A stretch of 64,000 nt of DNA, taken from the NCBI GenBank assembly GCA_964036045.1, contig OZ038378.1, positions 54,622,001 through 54,686,000 on the forward strand. The letters are read 5' to 3'. Below, piece after piece: positions 18,394-63,440 of this stretch. Each line of letters begins with the position of its first letter. The first letter of the stretch is position 1. Below the pieces are notes generated by a model. That model did no database searches. It had not been told where the DNA came from and saw only the letters and a program-made list of their open reading frames with translations. The translations under genes were made by a program, and so were the position numbers. This stretch comes from Eutreptiella sp. 'Long Island Sound 2002' (lineage: Eukaryota; Protista; Euglenida).

Positions 18394-18686
18394 CCCAAGA
18401 GGACCGCATGAAAAGTAATATTGGTAAATTCTAATTCTAAATATATGGAAGAGTTCATACATTAACCATCCAAAAAATGACACGTTAACCCAAGTGGATG
18501 AATTCCAACGAATTGGGCACAAGCATATCGTGGGCACCACGGGTTGTTGGTTGTTAGAATAGCGCACAATGGGATGTACAAGAGGTTGCAATGCCGTTGA
18601 GTGAGGGAACCAAACCCTTACCCCCCTCTCCGGGGCCCACACCCGACTCACCGGCACCCTTTTCCCTTGTGTAGCTCTTAATATGC

Positions 18687-18761
<75 letters not shown>

Positions 18762-19169
18762 ACACCCTTCTCGAGCTAAGGTCTAGTGTTTAAGTGAGCC
18801 CGAGAGTCTACAGGACGCTTTGGTCTAACAAGCCGTCGGCGAGTAGGTGCCCTCATCCCCTTTCGCCAAGGCTGTTGGTACCGAGGTAGCCCAACTGCCC
18901 CACATTCGTAATAACGAAACAAAGGCCGTGAGGCAATAGGCCTCTGTCCCCTTTCATGTGCCCGACTTGATCAGACTCTTTACGGACATGAACATCCCCA
19001 AAGGCGCGTGTGCGAGTACATCAGTCACCGAGGTGGCACGTAACAGGCTTCCCATTCTCTCGGCCCATCCCCGCTTAGCCATAATTTAGGGACACCTGGA
19101 AGAATATGGCCAAGCCCCGTGGATTGAGGCCGCCCATGTCTTTTGATGATCCCCCTGCAACCCTTGGTA
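18394..19169 (+). mobile_element. 5' fragment of RAG1/Transib-like element, subfamily A, heavily decayed
   Basis: Translates as MPLS...DTLLEL...PESLQDALV*QAVGE*VPSSPFAKAVGTEVAQLPHIRN...DMNIPKG...TGFPFSRPIP...TWKNMAKP...DDPP, collinear with the 54713-55474 ORF. Degenerate terminus CCCAAGAGGACC at 18394. It is cut at 19170 by a later insertion. Confidence 0.75.
18686..18759. repeat. (TC)n microsatellite inside transposase codons 2-4
   Basis: The sequence reads ATG CCT CTC TCT, then the expanded repeat, then GAC ACC CTT CTC. The sister copy reads ATG CCT CTC TCT CGT GAC ATC CTT CTC. Confidence 0.9.
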
Positions 19170-19499
19170 CACGCTAGAAGACCCAATCTCGTTCTAGCCT
19201 AGATGGCGCTAGAAGGCTAAAACGGAAAAAAGAGTTGGTTACCCCCCCGCCCCGTGGGGTGTGTGTGGGGACTTTGAGGGTTGTAACCTGGACCCCCCTA
19301 TCCGTACTCGAGCGCCCATGGTTGTTTTTCACAATTTCACTCTTATCATCGGAATGTGGAGTCCAAATTTTTTTCGTTGTAGCGACGTTCTAGCGAGCGC
19401 CGCTAGAACGTCGCTAGAACTTCGCTAGAACGTCGCTGCAACAATATATATGAATGCTCCGCCACTCCTCAAAGAGAAGCTACCCCGGCTACCATGGCT

Positions 19500-22400
19500 A
19501 GCCGTGGCCAATCACAAGGTGGCGATGCTCGACCCGACTCATGGAGCGCCGGGTTCCCCCCCTCCCACCCCCCGGTTAGCCCGGTTAGCCTCCCCCCCCA
19601 CCCCATAGGTCACTTGGAAGTTCATTTGCCGGCCGGCGCCGGGTCACTTGATGGTGGGTTAGCCCGATTCGCCCGGTTAGCCCCCCTGCCCCCCATGCCC
19701 CCTTTCGCGAGTCGCGACATGCAAGCTACCCCTCCTGCTTGGGGGGGGGGGGGTTGGCGGAACGCATCCTTGCTCCTGGCACCCCCCTTCTCGGCCCCCG
19801 TGTCCCCTTCCTTCTCACCCCTCTTGTCACCCCCCACCTCACCTCCCTTGTCACCCCCCTCCCACTTGTCGTCACCCTCGTCCCCCTCATCCTCCCCGTC
19901 GTCCCCGTCGTCCCCGTTGTCCCGCTCCTCCAAGGCCGCCCGGAGGTGGGCGTCCGCCTCCTCCGCGGTGCGGAAGAGGAGCTCCCCCGGCACCCGGAAG
20001 GTGCCCCCCTCCTTCTCCCGCTTCCTCTTCTTCCCCTTCTTCCCCTTCTCCCCCCCCTCCCCGGTGGACCCTTGTGATACCACCCACCAGTCCCCCGGGT
20101 CCAACTCCTCATCCCGGTCCCCCAACACTGTCACTTGGCTGACGGTCCCCCCATTGCCCCCCTCTGCCCAAGGGACATACTGGGTGTCCCCCACACCCGG
20201 CACCTTCCCATAGGGGTCCCGGCCCCTATTCTCCAACGGGGGGGCCTGAGGTTTTGGGGGGGGGGGGGGGCTTGGCCTTGCCCTTGGCCTTGGGCTTGGC
20301 CTTGGCCTGGGCCTCGAAGTGGCGGGGCTTCCGGGGTTTCTTGGGGGCCTGGGGGAGGGGGGGTTGGGTTTGGGGGTTTTGGCGGGGGGTGTCCTCTCCC
20401 CGCTGTCGATGCTGCTGCTGCTGCTCCGCCTACTGCTGCTGCTCTCCCCTCCCTCTTCCCCCACCCTCAGCCAACCCCTGCGCTGCGGGTCCCTGCCCCT
20501 CCTGCTCCAGAGTGCCTCCCACCTACCCAACCCGTGTAGCACCAAGAGGGCAATGTTGGGGTCATTCCCCAACATCCGGCCCAACTTGGTGACCCCCAGG
20601 AGGTGCGTGCAGCCTCCCCCATCGCGCCACTCCACCTGCACCCCGTGTGGGTCGGCTCCAAACGTCTGCAGGCTCACAACCTAAGAAGGGAAACAAGAGG
20701 CAGGAGTGTTCTAGCGGCGTTCTAGCGAACTGTTCTAGCGACGTTCTACTGGCGTTCTAGCGGCGGCGGTGGCGGTCTGGCTAGATCAAAGCTAGAACGC
20801 TTCCGTAGATCAACGCTAGAACGCATTCAGCATACCGTGCCTTGCCTATCGAGGGCGGGGGAGATTGCCCCCGAGGCCTTGGTGAAGGCATTCCGGGGGT
20901 TGGGGGGGTGCGGCTACGGGGTAGACCCGGTTGCGGGGGTTGTGGGGGGCTTGGGCTTGGGCTTGGGATGGGAGGCGATGCCGTGCACCAATCCGGCATA
21001 CGCCCCCCGGTTGGCGGCCGACGGGTCGAACTCCCGATACCCATGATCTCTGACCACGTCGGCGTCCACATCAACGTCCTCCCAACACACTCCATACCCC
21101 TAGTCCCATCGCCTGCCAGCAGTGGGCGATGAAACGCCAGTGCCCCGCCCCCCCCTTGTCGCCTTGTCGGCCCAAATTTCAGCCACCACAAAGCGAGGGT
21201 GCAGGCCGTGGGCTGGTCCCCCTTGGGGACCAGGAAACAGGGGAGCAGGCCTTTTGCTGCCCCCCCCCCCCAACAGAAATGGGGCCGAAAGCAGGCCCAG
21301 CACAGCCCCCCCCCCCCAGCATGCCCTCGCACCCCCGCACCCTCACTGCAGGCCGTCACATGGTGATCAAGGTCCCTCCCCTCACGGACAGGGAGCGGAC
21401 GCCGAACGATGGGTATGTTGGGATCTGGGACCCGCATGGTAACCCAGCAGGTGGTCCTCCTCTCCCAAACAAGTGAGCAGGTAGACCCAACCACCACTAC
21501 CCCCCCCCCCCAGCCTGCCCCCCGACGGGAGAGGTGCACGGAGTCGGCACCCTCAGGGCCTAAAAAGTGGAGGCTGTGAAGGGCTCGCAGATTGACTGCT
21601 GTGGGTATCCCTTGAGCGGCCTGCCTAGGGAACCTCCAGGTGTGCGCGTGCCCCTCCAACTTCATCACAGACGCCTAGGCCAGCACAGCCCCGTGCACTC
21701 CAGTTCAGTTGTGGGCGACCCCTGGAGGCCAGACAGCCACCTGCCGACCCCTGCCCCCCCCTCCCCCTTCCAAACGGAGCGGTCACTCGGGTGGTGTGCC
21801 CTCTGGGCCCCCCCGTTTGCGCGGGCAGTAGCACCGCCACCCAGGCCCCGAGCCCGGGCAGGCTCCAGGGCAGGGCAGCGCTCAGCGCGCCCTGGAGCCC
21901 CTCCTCCTGCCGTCCCTCAGCGCCGTGGGCGGATGGTCCAGTCCACGACAACACCACCAGTGCCTAGAGCAGTCAGGAGGTGTGGACCCCCCCAGTCGAG
22001 CGCCCAGGGAGCGCGCCCCCGTGCCTCATGCAGTCGTGGGGCCGCTGGCAGCATGTCAATGACCGGGAGGCGGCGTGTCCAGTCCGAACACTCCCCCGGC
22101 GGGCTCAGCGTCAGGCTCCCATGGCCTCCCTGCCGGGGCCTGGAGCACCAGGCATCACACAACCCCCCACACGCCCCCCCCCCCCCGACGCGCCTCCACC
22201 ACAAGCAGCCAGGGCCCGGTGGTGGCGGACCCTGGTTCACACCCGACGACCACACGAACAGCCGGGACGCCACTACAAGCGGCGACACGGACGGACCAAG
22301 CCGCAGCGGGGGAAACCAGAAACACTGGAGCGGCACCGGCGCCAGCGGGCAGGGCCAGGCGCGGCGCAGCCGTGTGACCCGTCATGCCCTGCGAGCGCCA

Positions 22401-23563
22401 CCAGCATGCACGCCCCGCCCTCCTGCCCCGCGCGCGCCACACACACAGGCACGGCGGCATCTCCCTCCCGTGTGTGCCACCACGGGGTACGGGGGCGGTC
22501 AACAGTCCGGCAGGCCTTGGGACCGGACAACCGCGATTCGCCTAGCCCAGTCGTGTCGGCACAAAGGCGAGTGCTGACCATGGGCCAGGGCGTCCGGCAC
22601 AGGCCTTGACCCAAACCAAACCAAACCCCCCCTTGTCGGGCGTGAAGACGTTGATTTGCGCCAACTCAAACATCTTCACCCCCTTTTCGGAGCGGGGGGG
22701 GGGGGGGCGCTTCCCCCCTCTTCCTCCCGGGCAACTCCACCACTAGGCCCCTGCAAACCCCCCACCCGCAGGGGTTTGTCCTCGTGGACCCCCCCCTCGT
22801 CCGCCCACAACCACCTGCCCTGCCCGAAAATTTTGTGATGCAAACGATGCATCAAAAAACAGAGAGTCCAAATCGGAGTCTCCGGGGGGACGAGGAGGGG
22901 GTGGACGAGGTTTGGGGAGTGGGGGGCGTCCAAGACGGCAGGGTCCCACGGCAGGTCCTGGATGGACCCCGCCTCCCTGTCCCCTCAAAAAAACCCTCAG
23001 CCCCTGCCCCGTCCGCACCGCCTTCTCCGCCACCACCTTCTCCTTCACCTTCTCCTCCACCGTCTCCTCCACGTCCACCTCCACCACCTCATCCACCACC
23101 TCCTCCTTCACCTTTGCCTCCTTTGCCACGATCTCCTCCATCCTGCTGCCGCTCCTCTCCAGCCGTCAGATGTGGTCCACCTTCTCCCTCACCTTTTGCC
23201 TCGCCTTCTCGAGGAGCGCGGCGGCCCAAGCCTCACACTCCTCCCCCGCCGCGCGTCCACCTTGGCCTCCCACACCACCACCTTGGCCTGTGCCCTAGCC
23301 TTCACCCCCCGGTGCGCCCCGAGGGAAGTGGAGACACTTTGCAACTACCCACACATTGACTCCACCTCGTCCTCCACGTCCTTCTCCACCATGGCCTCCG
23401 GTTTGACCGCCTCGGCCGATTTCTTGGCGGCCAAGGGCTGATGGAATGGCAACGGAGGAGGGGGATGCTGGGCTTGGGCTTGGGGCTTGGGGTTGGCCAT
23501 GGGTTTTGCCTTGGGCTTGGCCTCATCCTCTGCCGCCCGCTGGGACATCACCTGGGCCAGCAA
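19500..23563 (-). pseudogene. Spliced partner gene of RAG1-like transposon, with Pro/Lys/Glu-rich linkers and two Tudor/royal-family-like domains
   Basis: GT-AG introns at 23564-23704 and 20681-20835. Segments RQAAQG, EFDPSAANRGAYAGLVHG, VQVEWRDGGGCTHLLGVTKLGRMLGNDPNIALLVLHGL and VGDTQYVPWAEGGNGGTVSQV...FRVPGELLFRTAEEADAHL each have a counterpart in the 49.9-54.3 kb copies. Confidence 0.65.
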
Positions 23564-23704
23564 CTGTGCAGTCTTGCGTTGCGAAAAAAAATCGCAGCAG
23601 CGTTCTAGCGGCGTTCTAGGCAACTGTTCTAGCAACCGATCGTGCTGCCTAGATCAACACTAAGACGCCTCCCTAGATCATTGCTAGAACACACGATAAA
23701 ATAC

Positions 23705-25440
23705 GTGTTCCAAAATCCGCTCGATCAAGTCCTGCTCGGCGGACATGTTGCTGATGCTGAAGAGTCTGTCCGAGGGAAGCCTGCATGTGGCGCTGCCCCC
23801 TCCTCACCTTATCGCATCCCTGCCCCGGCATGGAACTTGCCACCGGGGCGCCCCGTGCACAACCCACGACACGTCGAAGTATGCAAATAGCCATGTCATG
23901 CATTGTGCTTGCACACCGCCCTCCCTATGGATGGCCGACCAATTACGCCCTGACACCTCGTCCAACCCCTCCACCTGACAGCCACCCCCCCCCCCCCCGA
24001 TTGTTGTGCTGGTTATGACCATGTTTCAGAAAGTGGTTGATGCTTCCTAAAATGTCACCCAGCACATGGCCAACCCAAATGGCCAAATGTTCTGCAACAT
24101 GGCATCTACATCATGCTCCAAGCTCAGTAGATACCATGATGCTGTACCAACAGTAAGTACAGTGCCGGCGGAAATCCTTTGCCACGGCGGCACAGTTCAA
24201 TGGGTTAGGGCCCTGATATGTACAATGGAGGGCGTGCAGAAGGTCCCACAGGTCCGCAATGGCCTTGTACTTGGCTGTCCTCGGCCTAATGCCGAGGCAC
24301 CTAGCAATGTCCGGCCATGCCTAAAAAAAATTGGCCGTTTCTTCCCCGTCCGCAAAGGCGACCCATAAACGCACCAACCTGCACGCCTCTCCGACAGGAG
24401 AACTTGTAGGTCTTGACGGAGCGAAGGGGTGACCGCCCTAGCCTCCCGGTCGACAAACTCCCCCAACAAGCGGCCCATGGCCATTGTCAAGTGCAAAATG
24501 CACAAGACGACCCAGGCGACTGGCAATCGCACAATTTGCTACGCACTGCAACCAGCGGCTTGCAAAGAAGGCGTCCCAAGGAAGAAGGCCGTGTAGTGGG
24601 CCTCATCACCCTCCATGGTCCGCGGGATAGCACTACCCTCCCACGTCTTCGTTTGGGCATTCCATATCCCCTCGTTGAACATGCAGCCCTGTTGGGGGCA
24701 TGTGGACACCCCGATCACCCTTCGTGTCCGCGGTTGATCCCCCCCTAAACTCCTCGCCTAGGTCACCATACCCAATTGGCTCAAAATTAGCCCCGCAGCC
24801 CACCTTCAATGCAGCTCAAGCGCCAACACCCTCGAACATGTGTGTGTTGTGGAACAAGCGTTGTTTGCAGGGCAATCCCACTCACACACGACTGTATGTT
24901 TGATTTTTAGGGGCCTTCCTACGTGACTTATTTGCCAAAATGGCAAAAATAGAGGCTCCTGGAGGAGCCATAGGAAACAGGCGACAATTAGGGTATGGTA
25001 GTTTTGGCAAGCAAACCCCTCAACCCGGTCTTTGAACAAACTAGCTCTGCGGCCCTAACGCACCTCAATCTCCTTGCGCATGCGTAAAGGGTGTGATTTT
25101 GCACCGCCTAATACGTCATGGAACTAGAGCGCTCACCAATCCCCGGGTGGTGCCAACAACGGCGCCAAGGTAGGGTGGTGCTCTTCACACCAATGTGGCA
25201 AGCGACCCCCCCCCTAGGCGGCCTGTCAACAATCTTTCTCACCAAGGCACACACGAGGAGGCAGTGATTGCAGCGCAAATGACCAGGATGGCTACCGCCT
25301 TTGCTAAGGCCCCCAACGCCAAGCCCTAGCAACTCTGCCATGTGCAACCCCCGCAACGGCTCCAACCCATTCCACTAACGCTGTTCGGGCACCAAAAGGC
25401 CTCAACAAACTTTGGCACGGGAATAGGGTACCTGCAACCC
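23705..25440 (-). pseudogene. RAG1/Transib-like DDE transposase, subfamily A-prime, 5'-truncated
   Basis: Motifs in order: GGDQPRTRRVIGVSTCPQQGC (second Asp at 24737-24739), WVVLCILHLTMAMGRLL, DGEETANFF, ASWYLLSLEHDV, GDILGSINHFLKHGHNQHNNRGGG (Glu position reads GGA) and QCMTWLFAYFDV. The order parallels RAG1 GYDEK, CxxC, DALHCDIG, NGNFARKL, TNYFHKTLAHV, GNESGNKLFRR and KHHWLYTS. Confidence 0.75.
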
Positions 25441-25637
25441 CATAGGCCACGGCAAATGTCGGAGGCATTCTTGTGTTTCCTAGGATGTAAAATTGGAGCG
25501 TGATTGTGAACAACACGAGGTTAATATTCAATTTTTTCTACGCGCTGCAAATATTACAAATCACAGATCAATATTCACGCGAAAATAAAAAAAACGCAGT
25601 CGTAAAAATTACCTTGTGTCTTGCGGCTCCCTTTTAG

Positions 25638-27460
25638 GTAATGGATGTTCTTGTTAATGACACTACCTGTGCCATGTCCAAGACATTGCGCCATGTCGAC
25701 GGCACCCAAGCCTTGTTCTTGGGGACCCTAGACCGTCGTGTGCCCCACTATTTGACCGTAGACTTCCCGAAGTTTCTAGGGCTCCGTGATTGCGAGGCCG
25801 TTGGAGTTTGCTTGGAGGTTTGGGTGGCCTTCAAGCATGATAGGCCAAGGGAACAGGCAGATATTGTCGAAGGCGAGGTTGACAAGGGCACGGAATAAGG
25901 AGTTGTGGAGAAGGATGAGAGAGGAGGTGGGAAGGTTTGAGAAACTAAGAGGAGGGGGGTACGGAAGAGGAGAGTGGCAAATGCCTAAACCCCTTGCCCC
26001 CCCCTCTTGGGTGCAAGAAGGAGACGGCCAGGGGGTGATGGGCCGCCTAAAGGATTTGTGGGGCGACTTAATGCAAGCCTCACAAGACATCCCTCAAGCG
26101 GAGTGTGTGGCCTTGCGTCCGACAAAGAAGGACACCTTTGACCTAACTTCCGCGCATGTCTTTCTAGATGACACACAATACCAACAAAGAGTAGTTGACC
26201 TACACAAAGAATACTACCCCAATCGTAAGGCCCCGAATGGGGCAATAAAGGTGTACACCGTAGTGCACACCATGTTGGTTGCCCTAACCCACCTTCACAC
26301 CTTGTGGACGAGAAAGGTCTATCTTTCAGATGTTGAGGTTGAGGAAGCCGAAAGATGGGCCAAAAAATTGGGGCACCGTTGGAAGTTGATGGGGTGGAAG
26401 GCAACGGTATGGGTGCATTGGACAGTGTGCTATATGTACCCTTCGTGAACGGGGGTTAAGTGGCCGTTTGAATCCGAGATTCACGGCCGTGAATTTCACG
26501 CGAATTTGACCCACTTTTGGTGTTTTTTTTTAGAAAACACTACATTTTAGCTTCAATATGACGCATTAGAGGGGGCAAAAGTCAAGTTTCATTTTCAGTC
26601 CCCATGATTCAATGAAGGTCCCATCCCAAACGGACCCATCAGGCCCAAACGGCGCCCAACAAAAATCCGGGAATTCCGTCCCCGGCCCTTTGGGCCTGAA
26701 TTTGAGGAATTCGCACCAATTACGTACGAATTTCGTTCGAATTTCGTACGAATTTGTAGGAAATTCGTACGAAATTCGTGCGAATTCGGCAGATTGGTAC
26801 GAAATTCGTGCGAATGTCGCGCGCGCTTTCTGCGAATTTCACCAGAATCTCCAGATTCGTACGAAATTCGCACGAAATTCGTACGAAATTCGTACGAATG
26901 TCGTACGAATTTCCGAAATTTCCAAATCTCAGCGAAAAATTGCCCAAATTCACGTGAAATTCACGCAAATTCACGCATGCGTGAATTTGGTAAATTCTCG
27001 TTGCGTTCACGGTGATTGAGCCCAACATTATCAAGCTACCAACAAGGTTAAGCATCAAATTTCAAGACATTTCTAAGGACAACGTTTTGGCGAAGGTGGC
27101 ACAAGAAACGCAAACGATGGCGCCAAGTTACGAGCAAAACAAAGCAAAAATTGGTGAAATTCACGGTACGGTGAATCTCGGATTCAAACGGCCGGTTCAC
27201 GAAGGGTACATAGTGGATGGTTTGAGAGCAAGTATCGCACAATGTATTTCTTTACTGCAGTGCCGATCCAGAGGAGGAACTCATCCTATAAAGTGCACAT
27301 TCAAAATAGTTTCCGCGGGTGGTCGGTGAAGATTCAACGTGTCTCTGTGAGGGGCGTGCGGCATTTGCTCAACATCTATGGATTGGATGCTGGGCTAAAA
27401 CTCTTTGGGAGACCATCCACCGTGACAGGGAGAGGGCAAAAGAGCAACAGGCGTGAATAA
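25638..27460 (+). pseudogene. RAG1/Transib-like transposase, C-terminal half, subfamily B, split by a MITE
   Basis: VPCPRHCAMS, then the 25786-26448 ORF ending ...GWKATVWVHWTVC, then the MITE, then (H/Y)SGWFESKYRTMYFFTAVPIQRRNSSYK. This gives an H-x4-H zinc motif and an E-x-x-N-like motif reading QRRN. An AT-rich intron-like tract ending CCCTTTTAG precedes it. Confidence 0.6.
26435..27210. mobile_element. MITE of 776 bp with TGTACCCTTCGTGAAC termini, TA-flanked, and internal TTCGTACGAA palindrome repeats
   Basis: Long imperfect terminal inverted repeats (26435-26505 versus 27156-27210). TA at 26433-26434 and 27211-27212. Removing the element and one TA restores the frame TVC-Y-SGW. The palindrome array spans about 26720-26910. 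Confidence 0.85.
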
Positions 27461-36960: not shown

Positions 36961-37649
36961 AAGTTGTGCAACATAGTGGGGTAGTCGTTTAAAAAATGTA
37001 AACTCAGCATCAAGCACTTGTCCGAGGGAGGGGGGGGGGGGCAAAGTGCCGACAAGCAGGGGAGGGGGAAGCGGACGAAGAGGTGGGAAAGAGGTACCGC
37101 AACGGTGATCGTCTCCGGACCGCATAGGCACGGAGAACAGCCCAGAGTGCGTGTCTCCGACAAGAGGTAAAGAGCTGTAAATAGGGGGCAAAGGCTCCTT
37201 GGCGCAAACTGACCGGGGCGCCGAAGGGGGGGGGGGGCACAACCAGCAAGTGCCCCCCCCCCCCCCCCGGTGCTGTTCTATGCTCGTCTCCCCACCTCTT
37301 GTGTCGTTCCCTTGCATGCGTGGGTAACCGCCAGTCCCTTGGCGCCAAACACGGCATCTCGTCTTAGACGACGCCATCCGGGAGGAGGGGCGCCGACCTC
37401 CCCTCGTCCCCTATTACGCTGGAGGGGCTGCACAACAGGCAGTCGTAGCGAACCCCCCGCAGATCCTGCTTGCTGCTGCATAGGCGGGCATGCTACCGCC
37501 CATAAAAGCCTTGGTTGAAGGGGTATCCCTGGAATCTCACACGCCGCTTGCGAGAATTCGACGGACATCAGGGCAGCATCCGACACCCGATGTCTGCCCC
37601 GCACTATGCACCACCCGGGGTGTAGTGCCGGCATAGTGTTTCGGGCTGT

Positions 37650-44034: not shown

Positions 44035-45540
44035 GCCCTAGAGACCTACGTTAAATCCAATATGTTAAATTTTCAATTTAGATTTTTGAAAAGTGTTAAA
44101 TGTTAACCCGATAAATTTTAACGTGTTAAACAAGATTACCTAGTTTTTTTCTAGATTTTAAAGGATTTGTGCCGTTGATTGCATGCGTATGCTAGGGTCT
44201 TGAGGCGGTTTATTGTGGTACAATGTTGCCCAATGGGTTTGTACAGATGTTGGATTGCCTAAGGGTTGGGTTTCCAACCCTTAGTCCTCTTCTTTGTGCC
44301 CACCGCCAACGCCACTCCATACCGCCAGTTCTCTTGTGTAGCACTTGTTATGCCTTTCCCTTGAGACACTATTCTCGAGCTTAGCATGACGCTGGTGCGT
44401 TGGAGGTGAGCCAAGAGTTTGGGGGCCCTTTTGGGGTCCCAACTCCTTGGTGAGTGGGTGGCTGCATCTCCCTTGGCCCGGGCCCGATGGTCCGAGCCCA
44501 CGGACGATGGCAACACCTTCCTTTTTCGTACTAAGCAAGTGGAGGCGTTGAAACAATACGCCTCCTTCCTTTTTCCCGCGTGCGATTTTATTGGGCTCCT
44601 CATCGACCTCAATGTCACAAAGACGGGGTTACGCCACCTCTCCGCGGCGGCCCGTCACGGATATCAGTTAACGGGTCGGAGCTTGGATAATGGGGGGTGC
44701 ATAGCAGAACCGCACATCGTGGTTGACCGCTATTGGGTTTTTATATGCATCCTCCATTGTTGCATGGCCATTGGACAGTTGCAGGTCGCTTTTGTTGAGG
44801 CGCGCTTGAGTCACTCCCCAAGGAGAATGCCGAGGCCGTGCAACGCTTGTTGTACCGGGCACGCAAGGGGGTGAAGCTGGGTGCCACCGCCGCACCGGAT
44901 GGGGAGGACGGAAGGGCTCTCTTCCTTGCATGGGAGGAGATGGGCCCACTATTGGGCTACGCGCCGGAGGACCCCGAATGACAAGCCGTTGTTGCCATGA
45001 GGGATCTCCTTCGGGACTTGTACTACGACGAGCCCCCTCTCAATGACCTCGGGGCATCTGCTGTTGCGCGGAAGTACCGTGCACATTGCTGCAAAGCCGC
45101 CTACCAGTCCAACTACCTCCTCTACCAGGAGTAGCATGTGACCACGGCGGTGGCTAATGCGGCACGTTTGGGGGTGGGTTTGAGGGCGGTTTGTGCGGAT
45201 GTGGTAGAAAGCCTAAATGCAATTTTAAAACGTGCCTACAACAATCGCACGGCCAGCGGGGGGGGGGGGGGGGGATGCCGGGGACCACATCTCGAGAAAG
45301 GGAGGCGGAGGTAGTTTTGCGAGTATGGCAATGGTGGCTTGTGAAATTTGATCTTCCCCTTAGGACCCAAGGAATCCCCCATGTGGTCCCATGTACAATG
45401 GCCACACTCATGTCTAACCATAGCCCCCCAACCATGTCCCTTTCGCTTGCACCCCCAGCTCTTGTTAGCCCTATCCACTTAGGCGTCACAAGTTGCCCGC
45501 CCCCCACCTGGCGCTATGGCCCACGGAAGTCCATGTTGTA
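44035..45540 (+). mobile_element. RAG1/Transib-like element, subfamily A, internally deleted; left TIR present
   Basis: TIR GCCCTAGAGACCTAC at 44035. N-terminus collinear with the 54713 ORF, with a deletion near 44670. Then FICILHCCMAIG, DGEDGRALF, QSNYLLYQE*HV, ADVVESLNAILKRAYNN (Glu at 45207-45209) and VVLRVWQWWLVKFD. Confidence 0.8.
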
Positions 45541-45899
45541 GTGAGGAGAAAAGTATGTGAAAAGGGGTGTTTTTTTGGGGGTATCTATCCCCCCCCGGTG
45601 GCAATAGGCAAAATGAAGGTATGTATGTGAAATATATGCCGTTATTTCTATTTCTAGCTACACAAAAATTTTCGAATAAAGATACCAAATCACAAAAATA
45701 TGGTGGTATTTTACATTTAGACCATTGCATTCCTTTAGTAGGGGGGGGGTCTATCTATTATTACTTTTACCCCTTGGTTCCAAGGTTACCGCAAAACCCA
45801 CGTATACAGCACAAGTAAAAGAACAGCAAAAATATGGGTCATTGAAAAACAAATAAAAATACCCCCAAAGCATATACGTGTATTTCCTTTTTTTATGAA

Positions 45900-47606
45900 C
45901 ATGGCCCAAATTTCGGCCAGTTTGTGCCAAAACAATCAAAACACATGGTGTTATTCACCAGACAGGCCCAAGCTGGCCGAATTTCGGCGAGGTCCTTCAA
46001 AACTTGAAATAACGCCACGGAAATGGATGCCTTTGAGCTTTTTCGGAAGCTGACCGAAATTGAGGCCTGCTTTTCCATTGGTTCCATTGGAAACATGCAT
46101 GTGTATATACACCTTTTAACGCGTGTGGCCGAAATTTGAAACCACTGTTCAAAATTGGGTTGCCGAGAAGCTGGCTGAAATTTCGGCCAGAAATGTGTGT
46201 CGTTTGTAATCAGGGGTCCACATAAGGCAACTTTGGCCGAAATTTCGGCCAGCAAAATGCAAAACAGAGAATGTACACACAAAACAGTGGCAATGCGTGG
46301 CACACCCCATACGAGCATGACAGTTATAGTAATACCAGAAGACATTAACGCTGTGAGAAGAAAGCAGCTTTATAGGAGTGTACGGTGTAATATTCATTCA
46401 CAACAAGAATCGCAAGTTGGCAAAAATTTCGGCCGGATGTTTTGGATGGGAAAACAATTGCTAATATGCGCAGAAATGGGACACCCTGGCCGAAATTTCG
46501 GCCACACCGGGAAAAAAGCGGGATACGAGTGTATGAAAGGTCATTAGACCAGAGAGCTGGGAGAAATTTCGGCCAGCCCTTAAAAAAATGAAAATGAGTA
46601 TAGTCATTCAACACTAAACCAGAAGCGTTAAAAGGTGTATATACACATGCATGTTTCCAATGGAACCAATGGAAAAGCTGGCCTCAATTTCGGCCAACTT
46701 CCAAAAAAGCTCAAAGGTATCCATTTCCGTGACGTTATTTCAAGTTTTGAAGGACCTGGCCGAAATTTCGGCCAGCTTGGGCCTGTCCGGTGAATACTAC
46801 CATGTGTTTTGATTTTTTTGACACACACTGGCAAAAAAGCCGAATATGAGCGTATGAAAGGTGATTAGACCAGAGAGCTGGGAGAAATTTCGGCCAGCCC
46901 TGAAAACAATGAAAATGAGTATAGTCATTCAACGTTAAACCCAAAAGCTTGCCGAAATTTTGGCCAGAAGCGTTAAAAAGTGGATATACACATGCATGTT
47001 TCCAATAGAACCAATGGAAAAGCTGGCCTCAATTTCGGCCAACTTCCAAAAAACCTGAAAGGTATCCATTTCTGTGACGTTATTTAAAGTTTTGAAGGAC
47101 CTGGCCGAAATTCGGCCAGCTTGGGCCTGTCCGGTGAATAAGAACATGTGTTTTGATGTTCTTGGAAAAGCTGGCCGAAATTTCGGCCAGGTTAAGTAAA
47201 TTGGGAAATACACGTATATCCTTTGGGGGTAGTTTTGTTTGCTGTTCAATGAACCGTATCTTTGCTGTTCTTTCACTTGTGGTGTATAGGTCGGTTTTGT
47301 GGAACCCCTGGAACCAAGAAGAATGTGTTGGATGGGAACACAATTGCTGATATGCGGAGAAAGAGGAAATGCTGGCCAAAATTTCGGCCACACCAACAAA
47401 AAAAAGCCCAGTATAAGTGTATGAATGGTGATTAGACCAGAGAGCTGGGAGATATTTCGGCGAGGCCTTAAAAAAATGAAAATGAGTATAGTCATTCAAC
47501 ATTAAACCAAAAAGCTGGCCGAAATTTCAGCCAGAAGCGTTAAAAGGTGTATATACACATGGATGTTTCCAATGGAGCCCAAAAGCTGGCCTCAATTTCG
47601 GCCAGC
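45900..47606. repeat. Array of about 20 copies of the 20-bp palindrome CTGGCCGAAATTTCGGCCAG, about 70 bp apart, with higher-order and inverted duplication
   Basis: Copies include 45976, 46170, 46234, 46487, 46757, 47101, 47171, 47371 and 47515. The segment 45910-46125 is an inverted copy of about 46627-46830. Spacers recur between units. Confidence 0.9.
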
Positions 47607-48049
47607 TTCAAAAACACCTCAAACATGATACACTAGATGAAGCGAATACCTAAGGCTAACACATCACCACCTATTTCAATGGATGTCACACAACGCTGGT
47701 ACCAACATTGCTCACATATGTCAAATAGCATACTCAAACTAGAAATGTAGAATATTCTCACATCGTGCGTATATGGGGTCCTAGAGGGCGGGCAACTTGT
47801 GACGCCTAAGATCCATGGACCAGGCCGCTATGGAGGCTTTGATGGAGAAGATGTTCGAGAAGATGAGCGACGAAGTGGTATGTTCTTGCGTGTGCGTGTG
47901 TTTGCTTGCATATGAAGCGAATTTGTAGACAATAGTTTTCGATTAAAATTTAATGGGGGCGTCGCTGTTTTTCTTTTAATTCTAACACCGGCGGTCGCTT
48001 AACATTTAAAATGTAAGCTAAAAATGAAGTGTTAAAAACTAAACCAAGA

Positions 48050-49490: not shown

Positions 49491-49989
49491 AAAGCCCTAG
49501 AGACCTATGTCAAACCCAATATGTTTAATATTTAGGGCAAAAGTTGATGTGTTAACCCAAAGTTGACCCTTTATTTTTGGGGAAGGGGGCGGACGGGAGA
49601 AACTCTACCCCCGCGGGGTGCCTTACGGGATCCGGTGTAATTTTCACGTGCGGGTTAGGGGGGGGGGGCTCACCTCATTGCATGGAAAAAAAATATCAAA
49701 ATGGTCCTTGGGTTGAATGTTTGAGTTTAATTTTTCGCTTAATGTTTGAAAATTAAAATTAAATCAAATTGAAAATCTAAGCGTCGCCGACGATAATATT
49801 AACCTGTCAAATATTAACCCAATTTTCGAACAATTAACCCTGTCTGACAATCCTTACGCGGACACCAGAACACACCAAAAACCTTCTCAATGACATCCAG
49901 TATTGATTACCGGCTCCAATGCCAGCATTGCACCTGTACCACAGGTGGTCCCACCTGTACGTTACACCTTTTGAGACCCCGTTTCCGGG

Positions 49990-51930
49990 TCCCACTATTG
50001 CTAGGTTGGATCAGAGGTGGGGTTAGCAGTGGGTTTGTTTTGTCCCTTGGGGTTACTCGGGGGGTTCATTTTGGGGTTTGTCGGGGTGTTAGTCTTCGGG
50101 CCAAGTTGCCCCAAGGCTGGGGCGGGGCGGGGCGGGGGTGCCTTTCCCCTTGCCATTGCGAACACATTCCAAGTGTTCTCGGGCACCTTGGGGGGTGGGG
50201 AAAAGGAGGCCACGGGCCACCTCGTAGAGCTTGGGGTGGTATGGGTATTCCACCTAGACCACCCCCGCTTTCCTCCGGTGGACACCGGTGACGGTGCCCA
50301 CCTCCACACCCGTGCGTTACGGGACGTGGACTTTGGTGCCGACGGGGGGGTTGTCGGCACCATCCCCCCTCCCCTTGGGGGGGAGGTTGTCTTGTGGCCT
50401 TTGTGGCCGGGGAGCGCTTGGGGGGGGTGGGGGGCGTTTCCCTTTGGGGGGGGGGGGGGGTGGCTCCACCAGATGAGTCATTGGACTCAAAATGCCATCT
50501 GGAGCTTTTCTTGTCACCATTTTTGGTGGCTGAGGGTTTGGGGTGTGGTGGTTTGGCCTTGGGGGGCGGGGGGGGCAAGAATCCTCTTTCATGGCTTCGT
50601 CAGCCTCCCAATCGCCCCCCATCATCCTTGCCCATATCCCCTCATCCTCCGCCCCCGTGTACCCCATCTGACCTAACGTGGCCCACTCCCCAGCCCTGTA
50701 CCTCCCTGCACCCAACCACACCTCCGAGCAGAGGCTCCCCCTGAAACCCCTCAAGATGGCCGACCCCAAGGGCGGGTCGGCCGTGACGAGGCGGTGCAGG
50801 TGCCCAAATGGCACCTCATGTGCCGCATCGCACTCCGGCCAGGACACAACCACGGGCCGCCTGTCCGTGGCGTTGATCACTATGTCCGCAATGAAACAGG
50901 CAAAACAACAGTTAATTTGTGTGACAATTTTTTTCATGTTTCGCAGTTAACGATAACTCTCAATAGTAATTTTTGCGACCACGACCAAAAAATGAAACGT
51001 TAACCTACAAAAACTAAGCCAAGGCGAAATATTAACTAGCAAACAAACATACATAGCCAAAATCCGTCGGCGCTCCTTGCGCCTGGGCCGCGGCGGGGTC
51101 ATATACGGCGCGCAGGGGGGCCAGTATAGGAGTCCACTAGGCCGCAAAAGGGACCCCCTTCCCCTACCGCCACTGGCGGCACCATCCGAGCGTGACCTAA
51201 TGCTGGAGGGCCACGTGGAAACGGGCGGTCCACAACCGCAGACCTCTCGGGTCGCCGCACAAGGTGAGCGAGCTCAGCTACCCGACGCCGTTGCCCTCCG
51301 GTATTGGGCTGAGCAACTCGCCGGGGAGGGGGCGCCAGGTCCACGCGGCCCCCTCGCTAACTTCTTGCCGCCAGGTGCCTTTGTATTCGCCTTGCCGGCA
51401 AATGACACACTCAAGGGCCATATACACGTGCGACACGCCCGCAAACAAGGGTTGATCCCTTGCGCAGCCCTCTTGGATGGCCCGTGCCGACCACGGCACC
51501 AGTGCGGCCTTGCCGGTGGCCGGGAAACCGGGCCCTACAGCTGTTAGGAAAAGCTGGGGGAGGGTTAGTTTCCTCGGGGTGTCGGAGGGGGGTTGGCCTC
51601 CACCACATCCCCCTCCCCCCCCTTCAAACACCCCATCCCCCCCCCGTCTACCACCACCTCCCTAGTTTCCCCCGCCTTGATCCCCCCGCCCCTGGCCTAG
51701 CTGTCACCCGGGCTCTCTCATTTTCTCTTCTTTTCCCTCTTCTTCTCCTTGTTCCTCTCCTTTCGCTCCCGCTGCGAGTGAGAGGAGTCGTCCCTTGAAT
51801 CCTCTCCCCCTTGACTCGCCGGGGGGGCTCTCGCTGGTGGTGGTGGTGGTGTTGGTGGTGGAGTTAGAGCCGCTGCTGCTGCTAGAGCTGCCACAGCTTG
51901 CAAGCGTTGCGCCATGTGGGTCATCCGCAG
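49990..51930 (-). pseudogene. Partner gene copy 1 with Tudor/royal-family-like domains
   Basis: AQRLQAVAA, then an Arg/Lys/Glu run, AVYDPAAAQAQGAPTDFGY, an intron (donor at 51052), VVVSWPECDAAHEVPFGHLHRLVTADPPLGSAILRGF and VGTKVHVP..GVEVGTVTGV..VEYPYHPKLYEVARGLLFPTPQGAREHL. Confidence 0.7.
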
Positions 51931-52206
51931 AGAAAAAACAAAGCAAAATTTCGCATTGAGAAATAATACTTGCGAGGTTCATACTGAAGCACCTAATATT
52001 AACTAATATATCAGACATTAAAAGTCGCCGGCGTTAACATCAACCTCTCAAATATTCACCCAATTTTCGAACCTTTTCGAAACCCTGTCTAAAAATCCCT
52101 ACAAGCACACAAGAACACACCAAATACGTTCTCAATGAGTTCAAGCATTGATTACCGGCTACAATGCCGGTATTGCACCCGTACCACAGGTGGTACCACC
52201 TGTACG

Positions 52207-54275
52207 TTACACCTTTTGAGACCCCGTTTCGGGGTCAAATAATTGTTGGGTTGGGTCGGGGGTGGGGTTAGGAGTGCGGTCTTTTTGTGCCTTGGGGTTA
52301 CTCGGGGGGTTAGTTTTGGGGTTTGTCGGGGGGGTTAGTCTTCGGGCCAGGCTGCCTCCAGGCTGGGGGGTGGTGGTGGTGCCTTTCCCCTTGCCGTTGC
52401 GAACACAATCCAAGTGTTCTTGGGCACCTTGGGGGGTGAGGAATCGGAGGCCATGGGCCACCTCGTAGAGCTTGGGGTCGTCTGGGTATTCCACCTAGAC
52501 CACCCCCGCTTTCCTCCGATAGACACCGGTGACGGTGCCCACCTCCACGCCCGTGGGGTACGGGAAGTGGACTTTGGTGCCGACGAGGGGGTTGTCGGCG
52601 GCATCCCTAACCTGGTGTTGTTTTGGGGGCGGGGGTGGCCTTTGTGGCCGGGGAGCGCTTGCGCAGGGGGGGGGGGGGTTTCTTGTTGGGGGGGGGATGG
52701 CTCCATCCGATGAGTCATCGGACTCGAAATGCCATCTGGAGCTTTTCTTGTCAGGCGTTTTGGTGGCTGGGGGTTTGGGATGTGGTGGTTTGGCCTTGAG
52801 GGGGGGGGGGGGGGCAAGAATCCTCTTTCACGGCTTCCTCACCCTCCCAATCACGCCCCATCATCCTTGCCCATATCCCCTCATCCTCCGCCCCCGTGTA
52901 CCCCATGTGTCCTAACCTAGCCCACTCCCCAGCCTTGTACCTCCTTGCACCCCCCGACACCTCCGAGCGGGCCCTCCCCTGCTCCCCATCCCTCAACCCT
53001 CTCAAGATGGCCGACCCCAAGGGGTCGGTCGTGACGAGGCGGTGCAGGTGCCCGGGTGGCACCTCATGTGCCACATCGGGGTCCCGCCAGTACACAAGCA
53101 CGGGCCGCGCGTCCGTGGCGTTGATGACCACAGCCGCAATGAAACAGGCAAAACAACAGTTAATTTCTATGACAATTTTTTTCATGCTTCGCAATTAATG
53201 TTAACTCTCAATTTTGTGACACCGATCGAAAAATGAAACGCTAACCTACAAAAACTAAGCTAGGTCGAAATATTAACTAGCAAACAAGCACACATAGCCA
53301 AAACCAGTCCGCGCTCCTTGCGCCCAGACAGCTGCCATCGCTGTACGAAAGGGTGGAGGACGGCCACATTAGCGAACGAAGTGGGGGTGTTCCGCGTACC
53401 ACCTCCCCCCGACACCTCATACTGGTGCTGCGCGGTGGGGTCATATACGGCGCGCGGGGGGGCCAGTACAGGAGTCAACTTGACCGCAAAATGGACCCCC
53501 TTCCCCTAGCACGACTAGCGGCACCATCCCAGCGTGAGGTAATGTTGGAGGGCCACGTGGAACCGTGCGGTCCACAACCGCACACCTCACGGGTCGCCAC
53601 ACAAATTGAGAGAGATCAGCGACCTGATGCCAATGCCCTCCGGTATTGGGCTGAGCAGCTCGCCGGGGAGAAGGCGCCAGGTCCACGCGCCCCCCTCGCT
53701 TGCTGTCTCACTGTCCCCCCGCAAGGTGGCTTTGTTTTCGCCTTGCCGGTGAATTTGGCACCGCACGAGGTGGCAAAAGACCCACTCAAGGGTCATATGC
53801 GCGTGCGACGCGCCCGCGAACAAGATTGATCCCTTGTGCAGCCCTCTTGGATGCAGACCACGGACAGCCGCGGAAGTGGGCACCAAGCCTTTTGGGAAAT
53901 ATTGGGGGAGGGTTAGTTTGGTGGGGGTGTCGGGGGGGTTTGGCCTCCACCACATCCCACGCCCCCCCCTCAAACACCCCATCCCCCCCCTCGTCTACCA
54001 ACACCTCCGTAGCTTCCTCTAGCTTGACCTCGTCGTGGGCTAGCTGTCCGCTGGCTCTCTTTCCTTCTCTTCTTCTCCGTCTTCTTCTCCTTCTTCCTTT
54101 CCTTTCGCTCCCGTTGCCGGTGAGAGGAGTCGTCGCTTGACTCCTCTCCCCCTTGACTGGGTGGGGGAGCTCTCGCTGGTGGTGGTGGTGGTGGTGGTGG
54201 TGGTGGTGGAGCTGGACGTGCTGCAGCTGCTGGAGCTGCCACAACTTGCAGGCGGTGCTCCATGCGGGACATCCA
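52207..54275 (-). pseudogene. Partner gene copy 2, a tandem duplicate
   Basis: Collinear with copy 1 over about 2.3 kb, including the 3' region (49860-49990 versus 52100-52230). The copies differ by independent indels, such as extra sequence near 53340-53430. Confidence 0.7.
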
Positions 54276-54452
54276 CTCGCATTTTTCGTATTCAAGAATA
54301 ATATTGGCGATTTTAATATTTAACCACCTAATATTAACTAATAAACCAAATATTAAAAGTTGATGGCGTTAATATTAACCTACAAAAACTAATCGAAACT
54401 GCCTAAAATTTACCGAACACAAAAAGCAAACAACAAGCAAAACAACCGCAAC

Positions 54453-55474
54453 CTTGTCCCACACACCCATCTTGTAAATCGAGCCCACCATGGGTGATAT
54501 GGAGACGCCAATGAGGCTTCTCACGAAGGGTTGGTCACCCCAGACGACCAACTAAGAGGGCACCCAATTGAAGTTCTTGCAGTCGAGGACCGTTTGCAAC
54601 ACCTACGAACAAACGGGAAACAATATTTGAATTAATTTTTCAGGATTAGTATTAGATTAAGTTTTCCGTCAGCGTTAATTTTTGCGAAATCGTAAGTATT
54701 AACCTCGAGAAATTACCGCAAAAACGAAAGCGGAACAAAACGACCCTCTACCTGTAGGTTCTTGGACCATATTGTTGCTGGTGCGGCCATGTCGTTATCC
54801 CCGCATACGGCCATACCAATCACCCATACATAGGCGGGTATTCGGCCCCATGCACCGTGGTTGAGGAGCCCAATGGAAAGTTGGGTCCAACTTCCACTTG
54901 CGCAAGGGTAGGCATCCCAACGGAGGAGGAAAGTGAGCGGCCGATTCCAATCGATGGTGTCCAGAAGGGGTGGACGCGATTGGATGTAGCAAGCCCCCCA
55001 TTCTACCGGCCAAGAGCGGCCGTTTGTGGGGGGATCCGCCACGAACACGGGTCGATGTAGCGCAAGCGGCTTGACGAACTCCTTCCATGTGCCCATGAGG
55101 CGGTCACGTGAAGGGATGGGACGGGAGACTGGGAGGCCTGTTGCGGCGGTGTACATGGCCCCCCAGGCGGTCATGAACTTTGACGCACGCTGAAAGCTGC
55201 CCTTGGGGACATTCAAGTCAATAAGTAACCCGATCCATTCGGGTGCGAGGTAGAGGACCGAGGCATATTGCTTCAGGGCCTCTATTTGCTTGTTGCGGAT
55301 GACGGGGAGTTGGGCAACCTCGGTGGCCTCGTACCACTGGGCCTTGGCCAAAGGGGATGAGGCCACCAACTCACCAAGAAGTTGGAATACCAAAGGGTCC
55401 CGCAAACTCTTGGCCCCACTCAAACGCGTGAGCGTCATACTAAGCCTGAGAAGGATGTCACGAGAGAGAGGCAT
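54453..55474 (-). pseudogene. RAG1/Transib-like transposase exons 1-2, with first and second catalytic Asp; 3' half deleted
   Basis: The ORF runs MPLSRD...LTFLLRWDAYP (Asp at 54914-54916)...KNLQ. A phase-0 GT-AG intron follows at 54603-54751, then VLQTVLDCKNFNWVPS*LVVWGDQPFVRSLIGV (Asp at 54534-54536). Confidence 0.8.
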
Positions 55475-55769
55475 AACAAGAGGTACACAAGAGAAAAGAG
55501 TGGTTGCGAGTACGGTGAGTCTGGGGACCGGAAAGGGATGAGTGGGGCTAAATAACCACCAATAGGACTATGGAACCCCCGTTGCAACCCGTTGGGCACC
55601 CTTTGACCACCCAAAAACTTCAAGTGGGCATGGTACGCACACAAGCAAAGCAGGGCAAATGTGCCAAAATCGGGTTAACGTGTTAACATTTGGAAGGTGA
55701 ATTTCTACCCCCTTACATACATTAAAAATCAAAATTAACAATTTTGGTTTTAGTGTAGGTCTCTAGGGC

Positions 55770-62149: not shown

Positions 62150-63440
62150 TCAGCTCTTGGTCCGGTTTCACCGTTATTTTTCAGCGTTCATCTATTGACA
62201 TCTTTGCTCTCTACAAAGTGAGAGACCACGGCTCCGTCTCAACGAGCAAAGCGAAAGCTGCCTCAACCCTGCCTTCTCGAGGATCACCAACGCTAAGTGC
62301 GGGGAGCAAAAGCAGAAGTGGCTGCCTTTCCCTTGCCTTCTTGGGGGCTCAAAAGAGGGCGGAGATGCTATGTCACCCTTGCATTCTCGGGGATCCCTAA
62401 CAAAGGGGAACAAAGAAAGAAGTGGTCCCCAAAAAAGGGGAACAAAATCACAGGTGGCTCCCTCACCCCTGCCATCTCGGGGGCCCAAAAGTGGGTGGGA
62501 ATGCTATGCGTTCTCGGGGATCACCAACGCTACACGCAAGGAGAAAAATCAGAAATGGCCGCCTCATCCATACCTTCTCGGGGGCCCAAAAGAGGGCGGA
62601 AATGCTACGCCACCCCTGCATTCTTGGGTGTCCCCAACAAACGGGAACAAAACTAGAAGTGGCTGCCTCACCCCTGCCTTCTCGCGGGCCCAAGAGAGGG
62701 CAGAAATGCTATGTCACCCTTGCATTTTCGGGGAACCCCAACGCCAAGCGGGGGGAGCAAAATCGGAAGTGCCCCCCCAAAAAGGGGAACAAAATGAGAA
62801 GTGGCTGCCTCACCCGTGCCTTCTCGGGGCCCAAAAAATGGGCGGAAATGCTACATAACGCCTGCATTCCCACGTATCCCCAATGCCAAGCGCGGGGAGC
62901 AAAATCGGAAGTGGCCCCCTAAAAGGGGGAACAAAATGAGAAGTGGATGCCTCACCCTTGCCTTCTCGGGGGCCCAAAAATGGGCGGATATGCTACGTAA
63001 CCCCTACATTGCCGGGCATCCCCAACGCCAAGCGCGTTGAGCAAAATAAGAAGTGCCCCAAGCAAGGGGGAAAAAATTAAAAGTGGCTGCCTTACCCTTG
63101 CCTTCTCGGGGGCCCAAAAGAGGACGGAAATGCTACGTAACCCTGCGTTCTCGGGGGTCCCCGAACAGGGGTTCAAAAAGGGCCCTCACCAGGCCAATGG
63201 AAACAAAGCCCATCACACAGGTCCTAGATAGTTTAGGGCAACCCTACAACCACCTTTCCTTAAGAGAGGGAAAAAAAAGAGGGTCTTAGGCAACGTCTTG
63301 GAGGGGCCCCTAAAGCTCCACAGTGGGGGGACAAAATCAAAAGTGGCCCACAAGTGGGCCCAGTGGCTCCATAACCCCTGCCGTCTAGGGGGGTCTCCGA
63401 TTGCTTCAGAGCGGGGGACAAGATCAGAAGTGGCCAACAA
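62150..63440 (+). repeat. Satellite-like element with units of about 103 and 141 bp
   Basis: The GTGGCTGCC anchor or a variant occurs at about 62317, 62453, 62555, 62658, 62800, 62942 and 63082. The head is shared with 38175-38245 (inverted) and 63740-63810. Confidence 0.9.

Follow-up and report, generated by a model that had tools for sequence, protein, structure and literature searches.

The debate on how the RAG1-RAG2 pairing arose can draw on only a handful of natural cases (ProtoRAG, TransibSU), and a locus in a euglenid alga raises the question of whether a RAG1-like transposase has been joined there by a second, conserved gene. The locus lies in a stretch of 64,000 nucleotides from Eutreptiella sp. 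'Long Island Sound 2002' (GenBank assembly GCA_964036045.1, contig OZ038378.1, positions 54,622,001 to 54,686,000 of the forward strand; hereafter the window), which is GC-rich eukaryotic DNA full of repeats. An initial annotation had placed two divergent transposons in the window, element A at 19.5-25.4 kb and element B at 49.5-55.8 kb, each with a RAG1/Transib-like transposase and, downstream on the same strand, a spliced partner gene sharing four blocks, the last two of which were taken for Tudor-like barrels. Our results showed that the two-gene DNA transposon lineage represented by element B is real, abundant, and apparently undescribed. With a probability of roughly 0.6, the family is a two-gene transposon in which a RAG1-fold transposase is combined with an accessory partner. 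The copies in the window are dead.

Element B is one copy of a high-copy transposon family

The 13-mer CCCTAGAGACCTA was found at exactly three sites in the window (49495 on the plus strand, 55768 on the minus strand, and 44036 on the plus strand), and the first two of them are the ends of the interval proposed for element B. Two further loci, L001 and L002, were fetched from two homologues of the open reading frame (ORF) of element B transposase exon 1, and the independent copy at L002 9841-14960 was colinear with window positions 55769-49490 from inverted repeat to inverted repeat. This end-to-end colinearity and the shared terminal 13-mer indicated that 49494-55769, read on the minus strand, is one of many copies of a cut-and-paste element, so that the discrete element proposed there was confirmed.

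The exon 1 ORF of element B has at least 294 homologues at E <=0.001 in a large protein collection, all of them from ENA assemblies and without a Pfam domain. For the second ORF of L002 (11026-12162), 182 homologues were found in the first protein collection, and an exon 2 profile built from 16 sequences matched 632 representative clusters at 50% identity in a second library, the best 150 of which are all close relatives. The family is present in hundreds of copies. Its full copies measure 4.5-5.1 kb and are bounded by terminal inverted repeats (TIRs) of about 30 bp reading CCCT(A/T)(G/T)G..., which start with CCCTAGAGACCTA... in element B, copy C of the window, L001, L002, and L007, and with CCCTTGGTACCTG... 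in L005. L002 is a young copy, with TIRs identical over at least 31 nt. Transposase relatives whose exon 2 is 33-35% identical were also found on short contigs with k141-type names, assembled from other samples (L003 and L004; ENA ERZ27267784 and ERZ27267786), and the lineage is thus not limited to one genome.

As to the anatomy of element B, the order of transposase followed by partner was as annotated, but a tandem duplication, the stops in the Tudor-like blocks, and a large deletion in exon 2 had been missed. About 960 bp of exon 2 are deleted, including the Glu motif, which leaves about 39 profile positions; in the alignment, L002 11191-12340 corresponds to window 54446-54262. The whole partner gene is tandemly duplicated (copy B1 at 49836-51926, copy B2 at 52081-54274), the two copies being 85-91% identical. 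With its internal deletion and its duplicated partner gene interrupted by stops, element B is a derived and dead relic, and none of the copies in the window can be autonomous.

The transposase resembles RAG1 at the level of fold and profile

In L002, a predicted GT...CAG intron of about 168 nt, which keeps the frame, lies between the two transposase ORFs, and the relative P0377 reads continuously from the first ORF into the second. The joined protein carries an Asp in GDGxP, then after about 90 residues an Asp in GGDxPW, and after about 230 mostly helical residues a Glu in D..ES.N..LK. The spacing is similar to that of the residues D600, D708, and E962 of RAG1.

When a profile of 17 sequences was compared with the PDB, the best match was amphioxus RAG1L (6b40, E 0.046), and in this alignment both the histidine of C.LH and the catalytic Glu of D..ES.N..LK met their RAG1L counterparts; phmmer with a single transposase sequence found no match in the PDB. 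The ESM-Atlas features of P0377 were nearest to RAG1_RNase_H clusters, with a score of 0.94 and 180 shared features. An AlphaFold model of exon 2 alone was poor (pLDDT, the predicted local distance difference test, 48) and was used as a weak fold probe only. With this model, Foldseek returned mouse RAG1 and HzTransib first (E 0.03), and in VIA-align, where helical matches at Z <13 can be unspecific, RAG1, RAGL, and HzTransib filled the first 18 rows at Z 7.2-9.0. VIA-align placed model residues 92-264 on RAG1 700-965, the part of RAG1 that separates the second Asp from the Glu. The assignment to RAG1 follows from the agreement of these four methods (profile, ESM-Atlas, Foldseek, and VIA-align), each of which is weak alone. 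Together they support, at the fold and profile level only, a remotely homologous Asp-Asp-Glu (DDE) enzyme with predicted RAG1/Transib architecture. The enzyme does not belong to Transib in the strict sense.

The hallmarks of Transib were not found. Termini of the Transib type, 5'-CAC...GTG-3', are absent from B, C, L001, L002, L007, and L005. No 5-bp target duplication flanks L002, L005, or element B, a weak negative that covers these three complete copies, and duplications of 2, 3, 4, and 5 bp gave no consistent result on the three, a 2-bp duplication (TG/TG) fitting L005 only. The 17-sequence alignment showed neither a conserved Cys pair nor a conserved His pair at the positions of the RAG1 zinc motifs; there, Y-L-l-l-L-e-e-D is aligned with Y-L-H-K-V-I-E-H of RAG1L. 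The description of these transposases as RAG1/Transib-like therefore held for fold and profile but failed for termini, 5-bp duplication, and zinc motifs.

Two guesses made by eye were dropped. A Glu motif of MULE/IS256 type was given up as all sensitive searches led to RAG1, and piggyBac, suggested by the CCCTAG ends, was given up as the TTAA flank is absent.

The partner gene keeps its place and diverges with the transposase

The loci were searched with five profiles, three of which (exon 1, exon 2, and Tudor-like) were built from database matches, while mid3 and pA were seeded from L002 and iterated. The order exon 1, exon 2, mid3, pA, Tudor-like on one strand was found in L002, L005, L007, L009, unit 1 of L008, and element B, and it recurs in at least five subfamilies. 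On the environmental contig L004, whose exon 2 is 35% identical, a pA-like exon follows downstream before the contig ends.

The partner gene is predicted to contain at least one conserved intron. Its N-terminal part is of low complexity or coiled-coil and is followed by a conserved middle block and then by the last exon, which encodes the pA module of about 85 aa, a proline-rich linker, a barrel that is extended by a helix at its C-terminal side, and finally a conserved peptide at the C-terminus. P0263 is an intact ORF of 334 aa with pA, proline-rich linker, and Tudor-like block, and thus blocks 3 and 4 of the initial annotation (pA and Tudor-like) lie in one exon. The same exon is in one frame but interrupted by stops in B1 and B2, and it carries a frameshift in L002. 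The partner proteins (P0241-P0287) share a conserved C-terminal peptide, possibly a short docking motif, which reads ...PPSGPAKMWDPTTGSHEV-stop in copies of the L002 type; its form in B2 (window ~52207-52250, minus strand) is ...LFDPETGSQKV-stop.

A polypyrimidine tract and AG stand directly before the same Val codon of the pA exon in L002, L005, both units of L008, the copy at 25.6 kb, and element A. This acceptor, shared by six lineages including element A, supports the intron that had been proposed before block 3 in both elements.

Same strand and short spacing raise the alternative of a single gene, in which the partner exons would be spliced, always or alternatively, onto the transposase and the barrel would serve as a C-terminal targeting domain, comparable to the chromodomain of chromoviral integrases. 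In L002, a long polypyrimidine tract and TTAG (12300-12332) stand directly before the first ATG of the partner, a candidate spliced-leader or cis-splice acceptor; it could thus be the cis-splice acceptor of a single gene, but in an organism with spliced leaders an AG just upstream of an ATG also looks like a trans-splice site. Moreover, many copies have stops that close their exon 2 ORFs, with conservation decaying before the stops, and the partner start Met-x-x-x-x-Q/H-R-L is common to L002, B1, and B2. We regard a single gene as improbable and treat the partner as probably a gene of its own.

The partner diverges in step with the transposase but faster. Transposase identity to L002 is about 66-69% in element B, 53-57% in L005, 39-49% in L008 unit 1, and 27% in element A (for exon 2, 53% in L005 and 39% in L008 unit 1). 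Identity of the Tudor-like block to L002 falls from 53% to 45% and then to a match by profile only (L008 unit 1), and in element A the pairwise match is a 26-residue fragment only, at 50%. The ratio of nonsynonymous to synonymous substitution rates (dN/dS) of the partner is about 0.3-0.6 between subfamilies, where dS is saturated, and 1.2-1.9 between the duplicates B1 and B2. Such a pattern, with purifying selection between subfamilies, is expected for a gene that is selected in the transposing lineage and decays in dead copies. Synteny across subfamilies, co-divergence, and dN/dS thus support the view that the partner is a selected component rather than a chance capture, as had been argued initially.

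The partner region is often duplicated. Besides the tandem copy in element B, two very different units follow each other at L008 4069-8005, and they may stem from two adjoining elements. In L010, the mid3 and pA blocks are separated by an RVT_1 fragment (5402-5959, E 4e-5), probably a retroelement inserted into the partner intron; this reverse-transcriptase fragment, an unrelated insertion, was the only real family match in the Pfam hmmscan.

Blocks 3 and 4 are shared between elements A and B

When iterated profiles were run on 5767 six-frame segments, both pA (E 0.0023) and Tudor (E 0.016) matched one and the same ORF of element A (20680-19625), and did so in the right order; MAFFT aligned this ORF over both domains. 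A second A-type copy at L009 3641-3934 showed 71% protein identity by tblastn and 84% by MAFFT over the same stretch. With hhalign, this A-type pair matched 12 B-type Tudor-like barrels at P 9.5e-6 (probability 83%, 30% identity over 71 columns). A narrow Tudor hidden Markov model (HMM) built from L002-type copies only reached element A at E 0.15, and the match came with iteration and hhalign. For blocks 1 and 2 of element A the claimed homology was not supported: block 1 (AAQG, 21620) lies inside an unrelated nested repeat, and the mid3 profile had no match on the minus strand of element A, where block 2 (FDP) had been placed at 21030. The four-block alignment was thus reduced to its two significant members, blocks 3 and 4.

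Shared blocks of this kind might arise by chance in GC-rich, proline-rich, low-complexity sequence, with no conserved partner gene behind them. Blocks 1 and 2 in element A are indeed spurious, and a plain six-frame tblastn comparison of the window with itself (SEG, composition correction) gave no A-to-B partner match at E <1e-6. For blocks 3 and 4, however, chance is already refuted by the profile, hhalign, and splice-acceptor evidence, the acceptor lying at the same codon; the second A-type copy at 71% identity, the same domain order in many loci, and the confident fold speak against it as well. We give it next to no probability.

The partner ends in a predicted Tudor/chromo-barrel

P0263 was modelled with a 29-row alignment. 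Residues 200-265 reached pLDDT 90-96 and formed four strands (206-210, 215-224, 230-234, and 241-245) and a helix (253-264). This agrees with the royal family, in which an SH3-like beta-barrel of about 55 residues has four to five strands and, in chromo-barrels, ends in a helix. Foldseek and VIA-align searches with this barrel returned almost only royal-family domains, with Z 7-8. It was superposed on the Tudor domains of PHF1, PHF20, SMN, TDRD3, and 53BP1 with a root-mean-square deviation of 1.6-2.5 A over 50-58 residues, and its match to MRG701, MRG15, and MSL3, which are chromo-barrels, spanned 68-74 residues and took in the helix. These models support a Tudor/chromo-barrel fold for block 4. 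Block 3 (pA) was modelled as short strands and a helical hairpin, with pLDDT 72-89 at residues 20-50, and no Pfam or ESM-Atlas neighbour and no structural match were found for it. Of the two blocks read initially as Tudor-like barrels, only the last one is such a barrel. Neither a kelch propeller nor a PHD finger was seen in the partner model, in which only the helical hairpin and one barrel were confident, and Pfam gave no hits. The partner is hence not homologous to RAG2.

Proposed role of the partner

We propose that the family consists of cut-and-paste DNA transposons which would carry two genes on one strand in each full copy. The first, with two exons and a GT-AG intron of about 160 nt, would encode a DDE transposase of RAG1/Transib architecture without the zinc-binding Cys and His pairs of RAG1; the second would be the spliced partner gene ending in the Tudor/chromo-barrel. 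The partner would act as an element-encoded accessory factor needed for the spread of the family, and by analogy it would most likely tether the transposase complex to chromatin or another macromolecule through its barrel.

Several observations weigh against this proposal. When all ORFs of the window and the loci were run through Pfam hmmscan, no meaningful match to the transposase or the partner came out, and the individual scores that link it to RAG1 are weak (E 0.046 for the profile, Foldseek E 0.03 at pLDDT 48, and Z 9 for a helical match). The barrel has no Pfam match either, in P0263 or in the window ORFs, and its aromatic-cage positions, which would bind methyl-lysine or methyl-arginine, are incomplete and differ between subfamilies when the alignments are judged by eye: the L002 type has aromatic residues at three of the four expected sites, the A type at fewer. 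At the divergent transposase locus L006, no partner was detected by profile. The synteny was inspected at about 10 loci rather than across the whole genome, and the dN/dS values come from 28-83 codons. As for transcription, the RNA contigs on element A lie on its nested repeat only, RNA reads showed no splice joints in the A partner, and no RNA run containing element B was found.

The partner could also be cargo that benefits the element indirectly, e.g. if it counteracted silencing by the host or set marks on chromatin. TET/JBP genes are indeed carried by CMCT and KDZ transposons of fungi (PMC12730594), and the partner evolves faster than the transposase, as cargo might. On the other hand, Pfam hmmscan detected nothing enzymatic in the partner, and synteny, the conserved intron position, and selection fit an essential accessory subunit equally well. 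We consider cargo unlikely and retain the accessory factor. A stronger form of the accessory reading, in which the partner would be an obligatory, independently evolved regulatory subunit whose barrel reads a chromatin or protein-methylation mark and so sets where or when the transposase cuts and pastes, is a speculative extension that we would doubt for now; the partner would then be, in a protist, a convergent equivalent in function to the PHD finger of RAG2. The idea of a chromatin reader steering a recombinase, put forward in the initial annotation, is an attractive analogy that finds no support beyond the fold.

Short motif arrays, different in each subfamily, fill introns, intergenic spacers, and subterminal regions, and the same motif stands inside the TIR of its own subfamily (Table 1; TGGAAC in L008 unit 1). 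These motifs are probably bound by proteins and co-vary with the family. In a variant reading, which draws on these sequences, the pA module would recognise the subfamily arrays in introns and ends.

Element A and the other copies in the window

Element A had been drawn at 19.5-25.4 kb, an extent that had to be shortened. In a DNA run, a depth of about 55,000 gives way to one of about 27 at 24.8 kb, so the repeat ends at about this point; upstream of exon 2, no exon 1 was found by profile on the minus strand, and exon 2 holds several stops. The stretch 24.8-25.4 kb, considered as exon 1 of its transposase, was ruled out by the depth and the profile evidence. As shown in Table 1, a transposase-like sequence is followed on the same strand by a partner, in line with the initial description; the exon-2-like sequence is about 27-35% identical to the L002 type. 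Element A is a truncated mosaic and a dead relic; apart from a nested repeat, it retains only an exon 2 broken by stops and the final partner exon.

The nested repeat reaches a summed depth of up to 140,000, and it also interrupts a partner gene at L009 5983-7296. Within element A, it alone matches near-identical contigs (from estuary metatranscriptomes and one RNA run). The tendency of the partner region to be duplicated is seen in the A type as well, where DNA-run contigs join position 20748 back to 19401/19411 ('goes back 1338-1348').

Partner-like sequence was also found on the plus strand of 24800-26450, where no Tudor-like block was detected; the depth of its sampled part (24800-25399) is about 27-35. 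This stretch may be an old solo copy, or together with the exon-1-like fragment at 18605-19174 the remnant of an older plus-strand element. That element A is nested in such an older element (exon-1-like at 18.6-19.2 kb, partner-like at 25.0-25.9 kb) is unproven.

Table 1 Features of the transposon family in the window and in related loci (window positions unless a locus is named)
Feature	Position	Strand	Remarks
Element B	49494..55769	-	Non-autonomous member, bounded by TIRs, of the RAG1-fold transposon family with CCCTAG ends; both ends carry the TIR 13-mer
Element B, 5' TIR	55735..55768	-	CCCTAGAGACCTAC...
Element B, 3' TIR, read inward	49495..49530	+	
Element B, transposase exon 1	54713..55474	-	253-aa ORF; profile match 54734-55537, HMM E 2e-149; region of the first catalytic Asp, RWDAYP
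Element B, transposase intron	54594..54751	-	TTAAT-type motifs; GT start; acceptor CAG mutated to CAA, compared with the GT..CAG intron of L002
Element B, transposase exon 2 remnant	54435..54593	-	Second Asp (GDQPFVR); exon 2 HMM positions 18-56 only
Partner gene, tandem copy 2 (B2)	52081..54274	-	ATG 54272; mid3 53545-53700; pA 52892-53140; Tudor-like 52411-52596 with 1 in-frame stop
Partner gene, tandem copy 1 (B1)	49836..51926	-	ATG 51924; mid3 51203-51358; pA 50653-50892; Tudor-like 50167-50313 with 2 in-frame stops
Element A	19216..24757	-	5'-truncated, decayed copy of a divergent subfamily with a nested repeat; 81% DNA match to L009 3428-4683 ends at 19216
Element A, exon-2-like sequence	23982..24748	-	GGDQP..., CILH..., E-motif region; split by stops into 4 segments
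Element A, partner last exon	19622..20680	-	Splice acceptor just upstream of 20680; pA-like 20513-20656; Tudor-like 19943-20200 with Lys-rich insert
Element A, nested repeat	21143..22627	-	Unrelated, very high-copy; contains block 1
Element A, CGCTAGAAC motif array	19375..19443	.	Further arrays at 20707-20824 (intron before the pA exon) and 23594-23633
Copy C	44036..45478	+	5' TIR of the B-type family, exon 1, exon 2 with stops; cut off at ~45.48 kb
Decayed exon-1-like fragment	18605..19174	+	Strand opposite to element A
Partner-like remains	25004..25871	+	mid3-like 25004-25069 (E 0.54, weak); pA exon with intact splice acceptor 25638-25871
TTATGAAC motif arrays	L005 6968-7063, 7816-7948, 9080-9201, 9960-10017, 11148-11271		
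CGCTATAAC motif arrays	L004 1286-1379, 3020-3340, 5432-5577		
TTAAT/ATTAAC motif	L002 10889-11020		In L002 and element B

Other repeats of the window include arrays of a ~142-bp repeat at 37640-38250 and 62190-63220, which lie 24 kb apart in inverted orientation, a 1.8-kb block of nested inverted and direct repeats at 45760-47620, and an ATCAC-type microsatellite at 5260-5600.

Significance

If the proposal is true, a RAG1-fold transposase and an unrelated barrel partner have been inherited together across deeply diverged subfamilies, and a large, recently active protist family would offer an independent natural experiment on why such transposases recruit reader-type partners. Royal-family domains in mobile elements would also be extended from long terminal repeat (LTR) retrotransposons to DNA transposons; in the literature searched, the earliest claim for such a retrotransposon dates from 2025 (PMC12477816). 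The family departs from every hallmark by which Transib and CMCT are classified (ends, duplication, and zinc motifs), which bears on transposon classification and on the annotation of repeat-rich algal genomes. In the literature, no paper was found that links Transib-like elements with Tudor domains or reports Transib in euglenids or dinoflagellates.

Comparison with known systems

Transib and RAG1 (Helicoverpa zea Transib, amphioxus ProtoRAG RAG1L, and vertebrate RAG1) gave the best profile, language-model, and structural matches to the transposase. Asp, Asp, and Glu are spaced about 90/230 here and 108/254 in RAG1, an all-helical insertion lies between the second Asp and the Glu in both, and RAG1L shares the conserved His at the position of the 'ATH' motif and a Glu motif of E-x-x-N-K/R type. 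Unlike them, the family lacks a Pfam RAG1 match, replaces the C(2)C and H(3-4)H zinc motifs by GSIYNMGVWD and NYLLYLEED, ends in CCCTAG...CTAGGG rather than CAC...GTG, shows no 5-bp target duplication in its three complete copies, and has an intron-bearing gene in a protist alga.

The CMCT clade (ESTA, Plavaka, and EnSpm with TET/JBP) likewise consists of multi-gene DNA transposons with divergent RAG1-similar transposases that are recognisable by sensitive methods only. Its members keep the C(2)C/H(3-4)H motifs, mostly CA..TG termini, and duplications of 2-5 bp (Kojima 2025, PMC12730594), and their cargo is a dioxygenase, whereas the second gene here encodes a reader-type barrel.

Chromoviruses and Gypsy-10_Ec32 of Ectocarpus, the latter described in a 2025 paper as the first reported transposable element with a Tudor domain (PMC12477816), resemble the family in that a royal-family barrel was recruited by a mobile element, presumably for target choice. 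They are LTR retrotransposons with the domain fused to the integrase, in contrast to a DNA transposon with a probably separate gene.

PIF/Harbinger, with its transposase and Myb-like ORF2, provides the working model of a second, non-catalytic protein that is encoded by the element and needed by the transposase. The likeness is one of analogy only, as both the transposase superfamily and the accessory protein are unrelated. Both the second ORF of Harbinger and RAG2 serve their catalytic subunits, and RAG1/RAG2 is the classic example of a transposase that cannot work without a partner that reads chromatin.

The genes of ProtoRAG RAG1L and RAG2L are convergently oriented, whereas both genes of the present family lie on the same strand, and its partner is without the kelch propeller and PHD finger of RAG2. 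What the family shares with the ProtoRAG and TransibSU systems is the layout itself: a RAG1-fold catalytic gene and a second conserved gene stand within the same TIRs, and the second gene ends in a small domain of histone-reader type, which is a PHD finger in RAG2 and a predicted Tudor/chromo-barrel here.

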